In this document: one piece after another, positions 296 to 10,685 of the stretch | Position numbering within the stretch: the stretch's first letter is position 1 | Layout of the letters: each line of letters opens with the position of its first letter | Virus record (IMG/VR): IMGVR_UViG_3300032307_000369 | Coordinates: 1-64,000 of that record | Strand: one strand, 5' to 3' | Length of the DNA: 64,000 bases | The notes under the pieces: generated by a model | What the model saw: only the letters and a program-made list of their open reading frames with translations | What the model was told of the DNA's origin: nothing | Databases searched by the model: none | Translations under genes and position numbers: made by a program

Positions 296-324
296 ATTGT
301 AGCATTAACTTTCGTCTTTGTCAA
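296..324 (-). promoter_or_regulatory. sigma70-type promoter
   Basis: TTGACA-N17-TACAAT on the minus strand. Confidence 0.8.
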
Positions 325-766: not shown

Positions 767-1369
767 ATGATTACTTCAATTTTTCCAAACAAAGTGTTAA
801 TTAAAGACTTTGATTTGAGTGACGAGTGGAACAACAATGTTACAGCAATAGTAAAAGCCATATTTGCCAAAGAGTTGGCAGAAAGAGGCGATTATGCTGC
901 CGCCGGAAATGACAGTATTTCTGTGTTCACTGAAGAAAACATGAAAGTTTGCCCAGAACTTGTAGAACTAAGACAAATGTTTGTAGACTGCTTTTATGAG
1001 TTGGCTAGTTCATATACTACTAACAAACTCACAAAAGAAGACATTGAACAACGTGTTAGAAAAGATTTAGGTCGTTTACCCTTTATGAAAAAGAATGATT
1101 TCAAACGTGTTCATAATCATGATTCCATGGTAGATGCCTTTGCAATCTTTTATCTAACAGATTTAGATAATGAAAAAGATGGTGGAGAATTAATTCTACA
1201 TGATCCAAGTTTTTCTGGAGTGTTCAACTTCCATGAAAAAAGAACATTTGGTATTGCCACTAAAAAACATAGAATGGTCATTTGCCCAAACCATATTTGG
1301 CATGAAGTGTCAATGTACACTGGCGAAAAAGAACGTGCCACTATTGTGTTAAATCTTAACGCCATATAA
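767..1369 (+). CDS. 2OG-Fe(II) oxygenase, TIGR02466-like
   Basis: HNHD...AIFYL, GGELILHDP, P..WHEV..Y.G..ER motifs; SD AAGGGG. Confidence 0.8.
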   Translation: MITSIFPNKVLIKDFDLSDEWNNNVTAIVKAIFAKELAERGDYAAAGNDSISVFTEENMKVCPELVELRQMFVDCFYELASSYTTNKLTKEDIEQRVRKDLGRLPFMKKNDFKRVHNHDSMVDAFAIFYLTDLDNEKDGGELILHDPSFSGVFNFHEKRTFGIATKKHRMVICPNHIWHEVSMYTGEKERATIVLNLNAI

Positions 1370-1848: not shown

Positions 1849-1943
1849 TGGCGGAAAGCAGAGGAGTCGAACCCCACCCGGCTCATCACCAGGACCCAGT
1901 TTTCAAGGCTGGTCGGGGAACCAACTCCCCTGCATTACTTTCC
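1849..1943 (-). tRNA. tRNA-Ser(TGA) with atypical D arm
   Basis: GGAAAGT/GCTTTCC, G73, loop ctTGAaa, long variable arm, D arm GGGGAG-TTGG-TTCCCC, CCA. Confidence 0.85.
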
Positions 1944-3328: not shown

Positions 3329-3414
3329 TGGTGGAGCCGGTTGGACTTGAACCAACAATGCACGGGGGCGGCGGATTTACAGTCCACTGGGGTTACCAAT
3401 TTTCCTACGACTCC
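3329..3414 (-). tRNA. tRNA-Tyr(GTA)
   Basis: GGAGTCG/CGGCTCC, loop ctGTAaa, long variable arm, CCA. Confidence 0.94.
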
Positions 3415-3424
3415 AAATTTGTAA

Positions 3425-3625
3425 ACACACTGTCTGCGGCATTTCAGCCCATGCCAGCTCAATGTGTGTATTAAAGCACTCTTCATGGATGAACCCACTT
3501 GCCGTACGGCCTGAGAATGCTTTAATACGTAACCATTTTTTTATCCACACAAGGATAAGCCATCCGGTACGCCGCCCGTTTGCTCCATGTTTTAAGTGCG
3601 GAGCCAGGACCTCGTTTCCTGTATG
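3425..3625 (-). ncRNA. Structured RNA region at the head of the tRNA array
   Basis: ~14-bp stem GUAUUAAAGCAUUCUC/GAGUGCUUUAAUAC with two internal hairpins; ACACAUUG/CAGUGUGU; GCUCC/GGAGC; UUAUCC/GGAUAA. Confidence 0.45.
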
Positions 3626-3641
3626 TTCACACTGTGTACTG

Positions 3642-3815
3642 TTAGTTTACACTAAACGTTGGCAATTTTGCTAACGATTCGTGATAAACTTTGGCACGGT
3701 CAAACTTATCTTGAATAAGTTTTTGAAGTTGTTCTTTAGACATTTCGCCAAGAACAGCTTCATAAGCCTGCTCAACAATACGTTCATTTAATTTTTCGTA
3801 ATCTATCTTTTTCAT
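3642..3815 (-). CDS. 57-aa hypothetical protein (MKKIDYEKLNERIVEQAYEAVLG...), first gene after the attenuator
   Basis: SD AAAGGA, ATG at 3815, TAA at 3642; below the ORF-track cutoff. Confidence 0.7.
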   Translation of the reverse strand: MKKIDYEKLNERIVEQAYEAVLGEMSKEQLQKLIQDKFDRAKVYHESLAKLPTFSVN

Positions 3816-3827
3816 TTTTTCCTTTAT

Positions 3828-3864
3828 AAAAACAAAAACCCTAGGGTTTTTAATCCTAGGGTCC
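3828..3864 (-). terminator. Intrinsic terminator (attenuator) upstream of the tRNA operon
   Basis: 8-bp stem ACCCUAGG/CCUAGGGU, 9-nt loop, then UUUUGUUUUU. Confidence 0.8.
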
Positions 3865-3895
3865 TTGAAGTTTTGAAATGTATTAAGTTTTTTAC

Positions 3896-4042
3896 TTAAC
3901 CATCCCAGCCCTCCCGGACCCTTGTAATCTCTGATGTGCGATCATATCCTAGACTCAGATTAATCACAGACCAATAGGCTGGCATAAAGCCGCCCAACTG
4001 GGGTTTGCAATTATGTTGTCTAAAATTCGATTGCGTTTTCAT
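3896..4042 (-). CDS. 48-aa leader peptide MKTQSNFRQHNCKPQLGGFMPAYWSVINLSLGYDRTSEITRVREGWDG
   Basis: Translated by hand. Lies between tandem promoters and the terminator; codons 41-43 contain AGGGUCC, complementary to the terminator 5' arm. Confidence 0.7.
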   Translation of the reverse strand: MKTQSNFRQHNCKPQLGGFMPAYWSVINLSLGYDRTSEITRVREGWDG

Positions 4043-4096
4043 TTTGATTACCGTTTTACCTTTTTTGTTCACACACTTTTGTAAGTGTATGTGTTA

Positions 4097-4125
4097 ATTG
4101 TATATTTTATTTAGTCTTTTGTCAA
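4097..4125 (-). promoter_or_regulatory. sigma70-type promoter P2 of the tRNA operon
   Basis: TTGACA-N17-TACAAT. Confidence 0.8.
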
Positions 4126-4192
4126 GCACTAATTTGTCTTTTGACAAAATATTTATGACAATTAAAACTGGATACTTTTACAACTTGTCTCT

Positions 4193-4221
4193 ATTGTATA
4201 GTACTTGCTTGGCCTTGTCAA
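4193..4221 (-). promoter_or_regulatory. sigma70-type promoter P1 of the tRNA operon
   Basis: TTGACA-N17-TACAAT. Confidence 0.8.
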
Positions 4222-4230
4222 GAACTTTTT

Positions 4231-4248
4231 TGTTGTATTTTTACAACA
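4231..4248. promoter_or_regulatory. Putative operator TGTTGTA-N4-TACAACA
   Basis: Perfect 7-4-7 inverted repeat 9 nt upstream of the -35 of P1. Confidence 0.55.
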
Positions 4249-4249
4249 A

Positions 4250-4840
4250 CTATTCTTTATCAGCAAGATTGAAGTCTACTGGGATTGCAAGCCTACACTG
4301 TCCTTGGAAAGGATTAACATAATGATACAGGAAACTAGGGAAGATTGCAAATTCTCCTGACTTTGGACTGTATACATTGGATTTAAATTTTGGCATCATC
4401 TCAAGTAGATAGCCTCTGTTTGCGTTGACTCTTGGATCTTCCAGTGTGAGTTCCCCACCCTTGCCATCTTCAACCAATAGATAAAAGACTCCAGTCATGT
4501 GGGATCCTGAGTGATTGTGATTGATCATAAAGTATCCAGGAGAATATCCTGCAACCCATCCACGTAGATAACTGTGTGGGTAATTGGACAAGTCCAAATC
4601 AAAAGATTCTTTTAAAAATGTAGCAAACGCAGGGAGTACTACTTCTGTTTTGAATCGTTCAATTATTGCTGACCCTGACTCAAATATGTTATCTTGAAGT
4701 ATATCGCTTGGCGGATTTTGTAAATCGTAAAGGGCAAACAGTTCACCAACTAGATCATTCAACAGATTCTGATCTTTGATTGAATCTTTAAGCACAGGTG
4801 TGGGCCAAAGATAGTTCATTCCATTAGTTAACAAGGTCAA
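4250..4840 (-). CDS. 2OG-Fe(II) oxygenase, TIGR02466-like
   Basis: HNHSGSHMTGVFYL, GELTLEDPR, FPSFLYHYVNPF...R motifs. Confidence 0.85.
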   Translation of the reverse strand: MTLLTNGMNYLWPTPVLKDSIKDQNLLNDLVGELFALYDLQNPPSDILQDNIFESGSAIIERFKTEVVLPAFATFLKESFDLDLSNYPHSYLRGWVAGYSPGYFMINHNHSGSHMTGVFYLLVEDGKGGELTLEDPRVNANRGYLLEMMPKFKSNVYSPKSGEFAIFPSFLYHYVNPFQGQCRLAIPVDFNLADKE

Positions 4841-5225
4841 ACTCCTTTAAAAAATACATCTTTACATCTGGTATAATACCAATCTCTTCATTAAAATCAA
4901 AACCTACTGCATTCAGTATCTTATTGTATGTATCTTTATCCTGCTCGTAGGGAACATAGTATGGATCGTTGCCATGTAGCAATTCTGGATCATTTAGTGA
5001 TTCGTAAAAATCCTCACTAAAATGCTGGTTAAGCCATCGAGCATAGCATATGGCAACTACATAACTCTTAGCAGGATATACCCAACCTAATTCTGTTGTT
5101 GTAAAATACTTAATGGCGTTTTCTACTATTTCATCTCGTACTTCAACTTTGTGCAGACTTAGATCATCATCGTGTTCAGTATTGAGTCTGTGAAATATCT
5201 CTTGACGTATCTTCCATTCTTTCAT
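4824..5225 (-). CDS. Hypothetical protein of the radical SAM cluster
   Basis: ORF with overlapping neighbours; WVYPAKSYVVAICYA core. Confidence 0.7.
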   Translation of the reverse strand: MKEWKIRQEIFHRLNTEHDDDLSLHKVEVRDEIVENAIKYFTTTELGWVYPAKSYVVAICYARWLNQHFSEDFYESLNDPELLHGNDPYYVPYEQDKDTYNKILNAVGFDFNEEIGIIPDVKMYFLKEFDLVN

Positions 5226-6126
5226 AATATTCTAATAATCCTCGATAGCCATTACAACTGTTGGTTAGATCTCTAACGTATCTGTAATGTTCTGTTAAAC
5301 AATGACCCTTAAAAGGACAACTTTGACATATTGGGCTTAGACTTTGTTTTTCTTTTTCTGCCCAAGCAATGTATTCCTCAAAACTGTCTAGTTCTAAGAA
5401 GTATTCGTTATCGTTGAGATCAAACTCTAAAACAGCAAAATTTCCTTTAGGAGTAATGTACACATGGTCATCACTAAAACTGTTATATATTTTATCTAAA
5501 CTATCTTGTATATGATATTCATTGATAAACTCAAACTTCTTCTCTACTGGACTCTCTAACCACTTGATAACAAAGTTTTCAAAATCTCTGTGTGACACAC
5601 TGTGACAGTTGGCTTGGTTGGTGCTGTATGGTTTGATCTCAACTGATGATACTGCACTGCACATATTCAATTCATGTATCATGCTATCAACATCTAGGTC
5701 AATTAATTTTTTACTGGCTAGGATAAGAACGTATAAAGGCTTTTGAGACATCAGCATATTTTGATATACAGTTTCATTTTTTTCTCTAGCTTCAAAATCG
5801 TAGCTGACACTGAGCGTAATGTCATCGTCAAAGAACCAATCATGTATCATACTGTAGTTGGTTATGATATTAATAGAACCTGTATAATATTTTTTAATGG
5901 TACGTTTTAGTTCATAAAATTCTTCACGTTTTAAAATTCCAATTTCACCACCATACAAATCAATACCTTTAATTTTTGTATGTGCTGTAATTTGTTGTAG
6001 ACGTGTTTCTAACTGCTCAGAACTAATAGTCAATCTGTCACGTAGCTGTTGAGGAGTTAGGTAACAGAAGTTGCAACTAAAATTACAATAGTACGTTGGG
6101 TTAATGGATACTGTAACTTCACGCAT
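5176..6126 (-). CDS. Radical SAM protein with C-terminal Cys cluster (SPASM/Twitch-like)
   Basis: CNFSCNFC, LYGGEI, CQSCPFKGHC. Confidence 0.9.
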   Translation of the reverse strand: MREVTVSINPTYYCNFSCNFCYLTPQQLRDRLTISSEQLETRLQQITAHTKIKGIDLYGGEIGILKREEFYELKRTIKKYYTGSINIITNYSMIHDWFFDDDITLSVSYDFEAREKNETVYQNMLMSQKPLYVLILASKKLIDLDVDSMIHELNMCSAVSSVEIKPYSTNQANCHSVSHRDFENFVIKWLESPVEKKFEFINEYHIQDSLDKIYNSFSDDHVYITPKGNFAVLEFDLNDNEYFLELDSFEEYIAWAEKEKQSLSPICQSCPFKGHCLTEHYRYVRDLTNSCNGYRGLLEYYERMEDTSRDISQTQY

Positions 6127-7189
6127 ATTCTTTTACATACTCTGTTGGTTCTAAAATGCCTGACATGTTATTAGCTTCAATGATCTTAGGCGCGAGTGCC
6201 TTCATGCGTATACAATGTGCCTCTACTAGATTGAAATCTTTTAGGTCTTTGATTGTTTTGCGACAGCCGTTACAAATTTCAAACATTGGACAAGTGTAAC
6301 ATGCTTGCTTCAAACTTTGTAGTTCAGGCTCTACTCTTAATGGGAAGATCTTTTTACCTAACATCTCTTCTTTAAAATTGATTGAGTACAGTCTGTCATC
6401 TCCAAATGATCCACAACTGTAGTAGTCCCCGCTTGGTTGTAGTGTTCTAATACCGCCATCACATTTACGATTTTGTGGACATGATGTTGCGCCACCGTTT
6501 AATCGCTTGACCATTTGTTTAGTATTAAACTCCCATTCAGTCAACCCTAGTTCCCAAATCTTAACATATATTTCGTAAATCTTTGCCAGCATGTAGGGTT
6601 TGCCCTCTTGTCCCATTACAATGTTTTTAAATTTAACAGGGGGACCACTACTAAAAGCATAGTTGAGTTTACATTCAACACCCATCTTCTTAGCAAGCTC
6701 TACATTCTTAATGGCAAGATGTTCATTCTCTTCTGTAATAACACTAATAAAGTCTGGACGATAACCCACGTGCTCTAACATAGCATCACTTACAGCCCAA
6801 AAATCTTCTTCACTAAATTCTGTAAGGTCACCCTTTAATCTTCCGCCACCGTATTGGAATGATGTAGTAATACCCATGCGTTTGTGATTAAACAACTCTT
6901 TCCACTTGCTGGGATTTTTATAAAATGGCCAAAGATTAGATGTAAAACTTAACGTGGCATTAGAACCAATAGTTTCTAAATGTTCAATAATTTTCCAGTA
7001 GTAGCTAGGATCCATCATTAAAGGATCACCACCATTAACAATGATAGTTTGTGTTTCTGGGTAGCGTTTTAAAAATGCGTAGACATACTCTAAATCTAAT
7101 TCTAAAGATTTATCTTCAGTAATGTGTGTGCTACTACAGAACGTGCATTTAAAGTTACAACGTTCTGTTGGTTTAATTATTAAATCCAT
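6119..7189 (-). CDS. Radical SAM/SPASM protein
   Basis: CNFKCTFC, NGGDPL, CPQNRKC..CGSF..CYTCPMFEICNGC. Confidence 0.92.
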   Translation of the reverse strand: MDLIIKPTERCNFKCTFCSSTHITEDKSLELDLEYVYAFLKRYPETQTIIVNGGDPLMMDPSYYWKIIEHLETIGSNATLSFTSNLWPFYKNPSKWKELFNHKRMGITTSFQYGGGRLKGDLTEFSEEDFWAVSDAMLEHVGYRPDFISVITEENEHLAIKNVELAKKMGVECKLNYAFSSGPPVKFKNIVMGQEGKPYMLAKIYEIYVKIWELGLTEWEFNTKQMVKRLNGGATSCPQNRKCDGGIRTLQPSGDYYSCGSFGDDRLYSINFKEEMLGKKIFPLRVEPELQSLKQACYTCPMFEICNGCRKTIKDLKDFNLVEAHCIRMKALAPKIIEANNMSGILEPTEYVKEYA

Positions 7190-7190
7190 T

Positions 7191-7484
7191 TTATTTTGAC
7201 AGTGGACTGCCTACTTCCAAATTGCCATCACCTCTTTCTAAACCATTCAATTGACGTATAACGTCCATGATTAAATGCTTATATTTCTGTGTAGGTCCTT
7301 CAAGTTCTTTAATCTTGGCATCCCAGTAATCTCTTTTCTCTGGAATCTCCATATCCCTAACGCAATTATTAGCGTATACCAAATACTCTTGGCAATAAAT
7401 TTCACGCTGTGCTTCGTACTTTTCTTTTAAAGAAATAAGTTCTTCTGGACTTAGGGTGTCTAAATCTACTCCATGGTCAATCAT
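7191..7484 (-). CDS. Hypothetical helical protein
   Basis: ORF translationally coupled to its neighbours. Confidence 0.6.
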   Translation of the reverse strand: MIDHGVDLDTLSPEELISLKEKYEAQREIYCQEYLVYANNCVRDMEIPEKRDYWDAKIKELEGPTQKYKHLIMDVIRQLNGLERGDGNLEVGSPLSK

Positions 7485-9112
7485 GTTATTCTCCTAAATA
7501 GCTCATTCATTATTACTAATTTGTTTTCTTCAACCCAACGAGGAATGGCTTCAGTCCTTACCACACCTTTGATAGTATTAATATTTCTAGGCGGAGTATC
7601 AGGATTTAAAATGTCTTCAATTTCATCATAGATCTCTTGATACCCATCTAAAATTTTAAAAATCTCCCAACAGTGTTTTGCAAATTCACTCACAGTAACA
7701 CTGTCTTTAAACATGTCATACATTGTTCGTATTAAATTGTTGCCTGCAAAATTCATGAAAAACATTTGCACAACATCTTCTCTTGTAAAAGAATAGCTAC
7801 TGGCAACTGTTTTATAATATGTTCTGCGATTCTTAAATAATCCGCCTTGGTTGGCAATATCCTGTTCATCAACGTTGTCAGTATATACATCAACCAGCTC
7901 AATGTTGTAAATTTCTTGATAAACAGGATCACTAATTTCGCTGTCAGGTAACGCCATTAAGTCGTAACGCCAACTTGACCATGCTCCCAAATCATAAAAC
8001 AATTCCCATTCTGCATAAAAATCATCTAAGGTACTTCCTGGCATGGCCATGATAAGTTCCATGCCAGGATGATAATCATATTTGGCACATAGATCCCGCA
8101 TGTATTTGCCAAGTTTAATTTTATCTGAGACTTTCATATCAGTGCGTTTAGCAACTTGCATTGCAACATCACTGATGCTTTGAATACTGATGTTGGGCAC
8201 AATGGCTGCTCTATCTTTTCTACCAAACGGTTGAATGATCTCAAAGAAACTATCTACTAGTCTTTTTCTTCTTTCGTAGTCTTTTGTTTTTACTTGACTG
8301 ATATCAATGAAGGTTAACCCTGCATCTTTGGCAAACTTTAAGAGTCCTAAGTCACGTTCTTCAAACACACCAAAATTAGCATCAGCACAAATAGCTTCAG
8401 TATATCCTGCTTCTACAATAGCAACACAATCCCGTTGAGCCCATTCAACTTCTTTTTTAATAATTTTTCCACCAATGCCGCCACCCCATTCACAATAGGT
8501 ACATTTAAAAGGACAACCTCTTGTGGTCTCAATGACCATCATGAGTTCCATATCGTGTTCACGACCATAGGCACTGAGTTCTTTTAGGAAACTTAGATTC
8601 TCTTCATACGGACTTGCTAGTGGAAATTCCCAACGCTGTTGTTTATTAGAACGTAACTCATAAGTGATTTGATTGACATCAATATTATCTTCAATGTATT
8701 GATCAATTACGTCAGTGACAAAGAATTCACCAGGGAACATAGGGCGTAAAATATAATCATACATCCAACGTTTTTGCCAAAGCTCTTTGTCTTTGGCTCC
8801 TATCATTGGACCACCTAGCAAATTTACTACTTTTGGATTTTGTTTTTTAACGTATTCAGCAATGTTGTCGCACAGTGTATAATTCCAAACATAACTGCTG
8901 TACATGACTATATCAGCTTCTTTAATTAGCTCATATATCTCTTCAATGTTTTGATACTTGTTATATTTGTAAGGAGGTTCTAGCCATTCAACTTGATCGG
9001 CGTATTTTCCGTTATGCTCGTAAAAACTTTTGCATAGCATCCACGTGACTGGATTGATTAAACTCCAGTCGGCATGTGGCGGATTGATAAAGGCTATTTT
9101 GATTCTTTTCAT
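7481..9112 (-). CDS. Cobalamin-binding radical SAM protein (class B methyltransferase-like)
   Basis: N-terminal B12-binding-type domain (SSYVWN...LLGGP), TTRGCPFKCTYCEW, DANFG. Confidence 0.88.
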   Translation of the reverse strand: MKRIKIAFINPPHADWSLINPVTWMLCKSFYEHNGKYADQVEWLEPPYKYNKYQNIEEIYELIKEADIVMYSSYVWNYTLCDNIAEYVKKQNPKVVNLLGGPMIGAKDKELWQKRWMYDYILRPMFPGEFFVTDVIDQYIEDNIDVNQITYELRSNKQQRWEFPLASPYEENLSFLKELSAYGREHDMELMMVIETTRGCPFKCTYCEWGGGIGGKIIKKEVEWAQRDCVAIVEAGYTEAICADANFGVFEERDLGLLKFAKDAGLTFIDISQVKTKDYERRKRLVDSFFEIIQPFGRKDRAAIVPNISIQSISDVAMQVAKRTDMKVSDKIKLGKYMRDLCAKYDYHPGMELIMAMPGSTLDDFYAEWELFYDLGAWSSWRYDLMALPDSEISDPVYQEIYNIELVDVYTDNVDEQDIANQGGLFKNRRTYYKTVASSYSFTREDVVQMFFMNFAGNNLIRTMYDMFKDSVTVSEFAKHCWEIFKILDGYQEIYDEIEDILNPDTPPRNINTIKGVVRTEAIPRWVEENKLVIMNELFRRIT

Positions 9113-9662: not shown

Positions 9663-10685
9663 TCATTTCTCCAGTTTCATTTGTACGTATTTAAATGACT
9701 TTTTAAAAACACACTCATCTAAGTCTTTGGTTAATTCTTTATAGTCACTGCTGATAAAACAACTGAACCCGCATTTTTGATAAAACTCACAAGTAAAGCA
9801 ATTGCGTTCATTCATAAAGTTTTGAATAATAGCTGTGCCTTCTAAATTGGATGTGACATTGTTTTTCATCAACACACTTCCTGAACACCCTTTAGGTGAA
9901 GTGTTATCGTACATAATAGTAAAACTACTACCACGTGTACAAGCCATTTTATTGTTGGGTGCAGTTCCTAAAAATGATTCTACATTCATAGTCTTAGGAT
10001 ACTTATCAATTAATGTTTTATAAAATTCATACAACTCTGACTCTTTTGGCATCATTACTTTTAATGCGTTATGACCAGGTAACAAGTGATCCCATGTCAT
10101 GGTAAAGTTATTGTACAAGTAATCGTGATACTCGTCACCCTTTAAAAGATTAGCAATATTTTGTTTAGTGATTACCAGGCTGATTAATTTAACATAAGGT
10201 TTGAACTGTTCAATATTTTGTTTAAAAATTTCAAACTGAGCAGGATTAAATCTGCCAGCTAGGTCATAACTAACACTCATAGTCAAGTCGTATTTTTGAC
10301 AAAACTGTATCACATGATCCATTCTATCGTTAACTAAATTCGTAACAAAGTTGAAGATTAACACTTTATCCTTAGGAACTTTGTTTCGAACTTGTTTTAT
10401 GAATTCGCCGTAATACTCAATAAAGCCTTGATCTATTAGTTCATCCTGAAATAGTTCGCCACCCATAATATGTAGGTGAAATTCTTTGTTTTTATTATTT
10501 TTAATCCAATTGCATACAGGGTCAACTTTTTTTAGAATTTCCTCTTGGCTCAAACCAATACGACTGTTATGATCCTGTGGACAGAATACACAACTCATAT
10601 TGCAATGTTCAAAGAAGTTGACTACGATCTCAGACCAGTCAATTACTTTTTCCTTTATTACGCCATAAAAAAATTCATCACTCAT
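9663..10685 (-). CDS. Radical SAM protein (SPASM-like C-terminus)
   Basis: CNMSCVFC, MGGELF, CFTCEFYQKCGFSC. Confidence 0.9.
   Translation of the reverse strand: MSDEFFYGVIKEKVIDWSEIVVNFFEHCNMSCVFCPQDHNSRIGLSQEEILKKVDPVCNWIKNNKNKEFHLHIMGGELFQDELIDQGFIEYYGEFIKQVRNKVPKDKVLIFNFVTNLVNDRMDHVIQFCQKYDLTMSVSYDLAGRFNPAQFEIFKQNIEQFKPYVKLISLVITKQNIANLLKGDEYHDYLYNNFTMTWDHLLPGHNALKVMMPKESELYEFYKTLIDKYPKTMNVESFLGTAPNNKMACTRGSSFTIMYDNTSPKGCSGSVLMKNNVTSNLEGTAIIQNFMNERNCFTCEFYQKCGFSCFISSDYKELTKDLDECVFKKSFKYVQMKLEK

Follow-up and report, generated by a model that had tools for sequence, protein, structure and literature searches.

A short leader ORF encoding all 20 amino acids and a putative attenuator precede the tRNA array of uncultured giant freshwater phages

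Organisation of the locus

The window analysed here is a 64,000-nucleotide stretch (positions 1 to 64,000) of the IMG/VR record IMGVR_UViG_3300032307_000369, forming the end of a 245.5-kb contig which carries RIIA and other phage families. DNA and protein searches of GenBank phages found no close relative, with DNA hits limited to tRNA-Tyr, hits to a 2OG oxygenase of about 26% identity, and nothing for a 543-aa ORF. On the minus strand, two sigma-70-type promoters of the form TTGACA-N17-TACAAT lie at 4221–4193 (P1, distal) and 4125–4097 (P2, proximal), the latter driving the leader transcript. Each matches 11 of 12 consensus positions, and only one other site in the first 8 kb matches as well, at 324–296 after the last tRNA. 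A stem-loop of 9 base pairs is predicted at the 5' end of the transcript (4091–4070) in the minimum-energy fold, and other main-clade leaders have a hairpin of different sequence at the same place, as judged by eye. Its likely role as a 5'-end stabiliser is inferred.

The leader ORF runs from an ATG at 4042 to a TAA at 3898–3896 and consists of 48 codons, with 20 different amino acids by codon 38. Within the ORF, a hairpin at 3974–3931 pairs UUGG with UCAG (CCAG in most relatives) and encloses GUGAUU:GAUCGC. This may be an RNA polymerase pause hairpin, although the pause function is inferred only. Strand A (AGGGUCC, 3922–3916, codons 41–43) is complementary to strand B (GGACCCU, 3864–3858), and the two pair in the minimum-energy fold of the leader RNA 4096–3816, which has an energy of -88.5 kcal/mol (z = -7.2 against dinucleotide shuffles). 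The A:B helix encloses an inner helix (GAGG:CUUC) and a variable hairpin at 3913–3867, the stop codon lying in the 5' arm, and the whole antiterminator has an energy of -30 kcal/mol. Strand B overlaps the 5' arm of an intrinsic terminator at 3862–3828, which is composed of ACCCUAGG (3862–3855), a 9-nt loop, CCUAGGGU (3845–3838), and U5-G-U5 to 3828.

The first gene after the terminator (3815–3642) encodes a 57-aa protein and has a strong Shine-Dalgarno sequence (AAGGA, 3824–3820). The protein has a mean column identity of 78%, is predicted to form a helical hairpin (pLDDT 82), and matches no Pfam or PHROG family. The model was judged too generic for a fold search and none was run. Between this gene and the first tRNA lies a conserved structured non-coding RNA (3640–3440; fold z = -3.2), which is 74–89% identical at nucleotide level in most of the 46 viral-contig loci described below, including most of the divergent lineages. 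RNAalifold gives 30 pairs for this RNA, 22 with compensatory changes, and it has no Rfam match. The tRNA array spans 3414–376, with 16 tRNAs called by ARAGORN and a 17th tRNA-like sequence at 1943–1853 that scores below the Rfam threshold. No consensus promoter or intrinsic terminator lies on this strand between 3828 and 450. However, a plus-strand gene (767–1369) interrupts the array before its last two tRNAs.

A preliminary description of this locus, made from the sequence alone, had listed the tandem promoters, the 48-codon ORF with all 20 amino acids, the AGGGUCC/GGACCCU complementarity, the terminator, the 57-aa gene, and a 17-tRNA array. These observations are confirmed at the positions it gave, the 17th tRNA being the sub-threshold sequence above. 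It proposed that a ribosome finishing the leader masks the antiterminator and stops tRNA synthesis, whereas stalling at any codon, from starvation or from host anticodon nucleases, switches on the array. Comparison with relatives strongly supports this interpretation, which has no experimental test.

Conservation and content of the leader ORF

Relatives were collected using the 57-aa protein as an anchor, which retrieved 46 viral-contig loci and 80 metagenome loci. No relative of the protein was found in 185,579 GTDB species genomes, giving no clue to the host. All 123 loci with enough upstream DNA (46 viral-contig and 77 metagenome) keep an ATG ORF with a stop codon 44–54 nt before the U-tract, so that conservation of the ORF, which the preliminary description had set as a condition, holds. 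The ORF has 35–51 codons with in-frame indels; the longest-ORF rule lengthened a few metagenome calls to 61–73 codons by picking an upstream in-frame ATG. A consensus promoter, TTGAC(A)-N17-TAnnnT, precedes nearly every one of the 38 distinct leaders, being doubtful only in L045 (L numbers denote individual loci and their leaders), and a second consensus promoter 75–103 nt upstream of the proximal one is present in about 29 of 38. Every leader has a short ORF, a G-rich strand near the ORF end, a variable hairpin, and the terminator directly before the 57-aa gene. A covariance model of the 3' half finds exactly one copy in the window and one in each of 37 loci. Arrays of 15–29 tRNA genes follow in every locus long enough to show them, beginning mostly 150–350 nt (up to about 900 nt) after the 57-aa gene. 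Several cover 18–20 amino acids within 6 kb, and several loci also carry a tmRNA gene.

Amino-acid diversity, the second property singled out beforehand for testing in relatives, is also retained. Of 77 distinct leader peptides, 68 contain all 20 amino acids and the remaining 9 contain 18 or 19. In the window's own proteins, complete sets occur in 0.08% (35 aa) to 2.6% (51 aa) of windows of the same lengths, and in 1.9% of 48-residue windows. Among 662 other ATG ORFs of 35–51 codons in the same loci, only 5 (0.76%) are complete. Inheritance from one lucky ancestor does not explain this, as divergent lineages are only 15–30% identical to the window peptide and are still complete, while random replacement of 50, 70, or 85% of residues keeps completeness in only 12, 6.6, or 4% of trials. 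Two of the incomplete leaders, L029 and L034, have 18 amino acids and also the weakest A:B pairing, which may indicate decay.

Rare residues appear to be relocated rather than lost. Cys has a mean of 1.03 copies and is never absent, yet occupies 13 different alignment columns, and His likewise sits in 13 columns. A tree of downstream DNA, built to count Cys relocations, was poorly supported and disagreed with the leader groups; hence only the tree-free bound of at least 12 relocations, from the 13 column states, is reported. When Ser, Arg, and Leu are each split into their two codon boxes, 29 of 38 leaders, including that of the window, cover all 23 groups, against a background of 0.00026. Leaders use 35.0 distinct codons in 46.7, compared with 27.7 ± 2.7 in background, and many of these codons are rare in phage genes. 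The codons are not enriched for those cognate to the phage's own tRNAs (333 observed against 381 expected).

The peptide sequence shows no ordinary protein-level selection. Codon-position entropies are 0.84, 0.69, and 0.83, such that third positions are not relaxed, and the N-terminal third is hypervariable. By contrast, the adjacent 57-aa protein stays 75–93% identical in most of the same loci (52–61% in the two most distant), and is 81% identical in L006 and L007, whose leader peptides are only 15–16% identical to that of the window. One apparent motif, W..AIN..SLSYDR(T/L)PE, is shared by the main clade and could suggest a functional micro-protein, a modified-peptide precursor, or a nascent peptide that stalls in response to a ligand, as in TnaC or SecM. 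ORFs with CxxxCxxC motifs, as in radical SAM enzymes, lie upstream in the window, although these were not compared with a family library. However, the motif coincides with the hairpin within the ORF (UUGG:CCAG around GCGAUU:GAUCGY), in which RNAalifold on 28 main-clade leaders shows nearly invariant nucleotides and little covariation, and all three codon positions are conserved there. It is absent from the divergent lineages L007, L029, L033, and L045, which keep the ORF, the switch and, except for L029/L034, completeness. The leader peptide matches no Pfam or PHROG family, and the upstream genes differ between loci, being tRNAs or tmRNA in some. A peptide product is thus considered very unlikely to be the function of this ORF.

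A further possibility is that the promoter-to-terminator unit is a stand-alone structured small RNA of about 260 nt, with the ORF untranslated or irrelevant and the terminator simply ending the sRNA gene. The very stable fold and the nucleotide-level conservation are in favour of this, and attenuator RNAs can act in trans, as rnTrpL does (PMC6614838). Nonetheless, RNA-level selection does not explain the intact ORF in 123 of 123 loci, the constrained stop position, or the amino-acid and codon-box completeness. Nor does it explain the 7 divergent leaders in which the ATG lies 6–10 nt after the -10 hexamer, giving a leaderless mRNA, an arrangement that is meaningful only if the ATG is used. An SD-like GAGAAA/GGAAAG lies at -7 to -12. 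This evidence for translation is indirect, there being no expression, Term-seq, or ribosome-profiling data. In 27 of 35 loci the downstream genes have no promoter of their own, whereas 8 of 35 relatives, but not the window, have an extra promoter just before the first tRNA. The sRNA reading is therefore regarded as very unlikely.

The terminator and antiterminator helices

Per-sequence analysis finds a strand A in the last part of the ORF that pairs with strand B in every leader. Strand B comprises the nucleotides just before the terminator stem plus the first 5–8 nt of that stem in nearly all leaders (13 in L006). The strands change in concert, from AGGGUCC with GGACCCU in the window and main clade to GGGGUCC with GGACCCC in one clade, GGGUUCC with GGAACCC in L014, GGGGUUCUUAGAA with UUUAGGAACCC in L015 and L043, GGGGUUUCAU with AUGAAACCCC in L045, GGGGUUCUG with CAGAGCCCC in L006, and GGGGUUCCG with CGGGACCCC in L046. 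Among 14 B types, each A pairs better with its own B than with permuted ones (p = 5e-5). On the model-based alignment A2, 87% of cells in the antiterminator helix are paired and 7 of 8 pairs changed on both sides, with 0 of 500 shuffles as good and no slid control coming close. Covariation of this pairing, which had been named in advance as a test, is thus found. The terminator, an 8-bp G+C-rich stem followed by a U-tract, has 99.3% of cells paired and 5 of 8 pairs changed on both sides across 38 leaders. MAFFT and covariance-model alignments of the 3' part both misplace the most divergent leaders; hence these pair counts are conservative and are supplemented by the per-sequence duplexes. One terminator base (U or C, column 94 of A2) covaries with both its partner in A and its partner in the terminator 3' arm, which is the signature of a two-state switch.

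The two states are nearly isoenergetic. With A free, the minimum-energy fold lacks an intact terminator in 35 of 38 leaders, whereas with the RNA masked to 10 nt past the stop codon, as by a terminating ribosome, the full terminator forms in 38 of 38. The stop codon always lies inside the antiterminator hairpin or at its edge, and all 20 amino acids lie upstream of A in 31 of 38 leaders. Geometry and folding therefore agree with a ribosome at the ORF end blocking the antiterminator and one stalled upstream leaving it free, but they do not by themselves settle whether this occurs, as it has not been tested in vivo. No anti-antiterminator was found, with no pairing of the ORF body to strand A in the minimum-energy folds and only a weak consensus structure for the ORF body (-6.8 kcal/mol, 2 compensatory pairs) that does not involve A. 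Untranslated transcripts should therefore read through, and regulation needs efficient ribosome loading on a weak Shine-Dalgarno site.

Proposed mechanism and relation to known systems

The unit is best explained, with fairly good confidence, as a ribosome-mediated transcription attenuator whose leader ORF has been selected to contain a codon for every amino acid, and usually both codon boxes for Ser, Arg, and Leu. In this view, the strong promoters start a transcript that is translated at once, from a weak Shine-Dalgarno site or, in some lineages, from a 5'-terminal AUG. A ribosome that keeps pace would run over strand A and sit on the stop codon inside the antiterminator hairpin, allowing strand B to pair with the downstream arm, so that the terminator forms, transcription stops at 3838–3828, and a leader RNA of about 260 nt is released. 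If the ribosome is delayed at any codon upstream of A, for want of any charged tRNA or from general translation stress, A and the enclosed hairpin would fold first and capture B as soon as it is made, because B is made before the terminator's 3' arm. Polymerase would then read on into the 57-aa gene, the structured RNA, and the tRNA array. As the window has no other consensus promoter or terminator on this strand between the attenuator and tRNA-His, the array would depend on read-through, resulting in a supply-on-demand loop for a near-complete phage tRNA set. The sequence comparisons establish the anatomy of the unit, its conservation, amino-acid completeness under selection, covariation of both helices, and the folding energetics, whereas translation, the response to stalling, sufficient stalling at single hungry codons, the polarity in vivo, and the natural trigger are inferred. 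Each amino acid is mostly represented by a single codon, which may respond only to severe depletion, and stalling within about 5 codons of A, such as at Glu38 in the window, would mask A.

It may be that the same translation-coupled attenuator reads overall translation capacity, such as ribosome availability, elongation rate, or the timing of host take-over, rather than individual tRNAs. The complete codon set would then only make the ORF a representative sample of coding sequence, and its role would be temporal control of tRNA expression during infection rather than a response to loss of particular tRNAs. This is supported by the expected read-through without a ribosome, the lack of matching between codon choice and the phage's tRNAs, and the weak amino-acid-specific signals of single codons, and the E. 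coli uORF toiL shows that one uORF can report many kinds of translation stress (PMC12121999). However, a pure rate sensor would not need every amino acid, yet the single Cys, His, Trp, and Tyr codons are retained through at least 12 relocations and both boxes of Ser, Arg, and Leu are kept. This alternative is considered unlikely. The broadest reading, judged slightly more probable than not, is that large uncultured freshwater phages carry a universal sensor of charged-tRNA supply, wired to a near-complete tRNA set, a conserved 57-aa protein, and a new structured RNA. The phage would then switch on its replacement translation kit only when the host's tRNA pool fails, for example after attack by anticodon nucleases or during starvation.

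Attenuators have been textbook examples of sensing one amino acid or one family of amino acids. A leader selected for completeness would show that the same device can be generalised to monitor the whole aminoacyl-tRNA pool. It would also give the first cis-regulatory logic for phage tRNA arrays, the function and regulation of which are still debated between codon compensation and escape from tRNA-targeting defences (PMC10264068), and would make the hypothesis that phage tRNAs are made on demand directly testable. No description of a complete-amino-acid leader or of attenuation of a phage tRNA array was found in the full-text literature searched, although such absence is not proof of novelty. 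The element is compact, at about 270 nt, and uses consensus bacterial signals, so it could also serve as a portable reporter of tRNA or translation stress, while the completeness signature is a simple new search criterion for sensory uORFs.

The trp, his, leu, thr, ilvGMEDA, and pheA leaders of enterobacteria have a short translated leader ORF, an intrinsic terminator, an antiterminator sharing a strand with the terminator, and ribosome position deciding the fold, and their codon content mirrors what the operon supplies. The element described here has the conserved ORF, the terminator, and the alternative helix, with its translation and ribosome dependence inferred. In place of runs of one regulatory codon, it has one to a few codons of every amino acid, and strand A lies inside the ORF upstream of the stop codon. 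With no 1:2-type pause/anti-antiterminator pairing found, absence of translation should give read-through rather than super-attenuation. The regulated genes are tRNAs in a phage rather than biosynthetic enzymes. Compared with the arrest leaders TnaC, SecM, and Erm, no arrest motif selected at the amino-acid level is found.

The multi-input logic resembles toiL, the uORF of E. coli topAI-yjhQ, which responds to ribosome stalling at many different positions and so reports many kinds of translation stress (Baniulyte and Wade 2025, PMC12121999). toiL senses antibiotics and works by unmasking a ribosome-binding site and relieving Rho-dependent termination; it has no sequence similarity to this leader, is not reported to contain all amino acids, and is not associated with tRNA genes. 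The leaderless variants in 7 divergent lineages resemble the polycysteine short ORFs of mycobacteria, which are sensory and translated from a 5'-terminal AUG (Canestrari et al., bioRxiv 10.1101/834739). These are specific to cysteine through runs of Cys codons and control translation of the next gene through RBS sequestration, not transcription termination, and there is no sequence relationship. T-box riboswitches are also leader RNAs that switch between terminator and antiterminator and report tRNA charging. A search of 3400–4130 against Rfam 15 returned no T-box hit, and no other hit near its gathering score even at E ≤ 10, only chance-level hits appearing at permissive thresholds. T-boxes bind one uncharged tRNA directly and are not translated, whereas the signal here, amino-acid completeness of an ORF, only makes sense through translation.

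Promoters and sequence signals around the leader and the array

A small hairpin, GUUGUA-(3–5 nt)-UACAAC followed by A-rich sequence, recurs next to the leader promoters. In the window it lies at 4225–4250 on the minus strand. Among the related loci (designated by L numbers), it is found between the two promoters in L003, L010, L011, L016, L023, L036, L039, and L040, and upstream of the single promoter in L007, L029, and L034. A conserved AAATAG-N-GG motif abuts the -35 hexamer. Both could be a protein-binding site or a terminator for the opposite strand.

In 8 of 35 related loci (L016 6376, L024 6379, L031 6379, L038 6387, L040 6365, L046 6384, L047 6342, and L026 6992) a consensus promoter ends about 8 nt before the first tRNA (tRNA-Tyr), so transcription would start at the mature 5' end. 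In those phages the array is not controlled by the attenuator alone. In the window, a third perfect-class promoter, TTGACA-N17-TACAAT with an extended TG, is located at 296–324 (minus strand), directly after the last tRNA (tRNA-His) at the contig end.

The regions at 767–1369 (plus strand), 4250–4840 (minus strand), and 5176–9112 (minus strand) of the window contain two diverged 2OG-Fe(II) oxygenase genes, which flank or interrupt the tRNA array, with one of them on the opposite strand inside it. They also contain three ORFs with CxxxCxxC motifs, as radical SAM enzymes have; these ORFs, which were not compared with a family library, lie just upstream of the leader promoters.

Divergence of leaders between loci

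The leaders of L029 (4411–4597), L034 (3147–3340), and L058 have only 18 amino acids. L029 and L034 also have the weakest antiterminator pairing, at 4–5 bp. It may be that these are decaying copies or sequencing variants.

Across L002–L047, a tree built from the DNA just downstream of the attenuator (the 57-aa gene plus spacer) does not group loci the way their leader peptides do; for example, L006 groups with L017 and L014 with L024. This could indicate modular exchange of leaders between phages, or simply a weak tree.

Conserved RNAs and translation genes associated with the array

The spacer between the 57-aa gene and the first tRNA, at 3440–3640 on the minus strand of the window, is a conserved structured RNA. 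Equivalents are present in most of L003–L047, about 25–230 nt after the 57-aa gene, and are 74–89% identical at nucleotide level even in loci whose leaders are unrecognisably diverged. RNAalifold gives 30 pairs, 22 of them compensatory, and invariant motifs include GGAAACGAGGUCC, AAACGGGCGGC, and CGUAUUAAAGCAU...GUGCUUUAAUACACAC. The RNA has no Rfam match and is a candidate new RNA family co-transcribed with the tRNAs.

A tRNA-like sequence with a long variable arm is located at 1853–1943 (minus strand) of the window. It is not called by ARAGORN, and the Rfam tRNA-Sec model scores it at 38 bits, below the gathering score of 47. It is probably the 17th tRNA counted in the preliminary description, perhaps a tRNA-Ser.

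Many of these phages also encode a tmRNA with proteobacterial-type tags ending in ALAA or AIAA close to the tRNA array, found upstream of the leader in L010, L016, L031, L033, L040, and L047 and at 9915–10320 in L006. Together with tRNAs for 18–20 amino acids, this suggests an extensive phage-borne translation kit.
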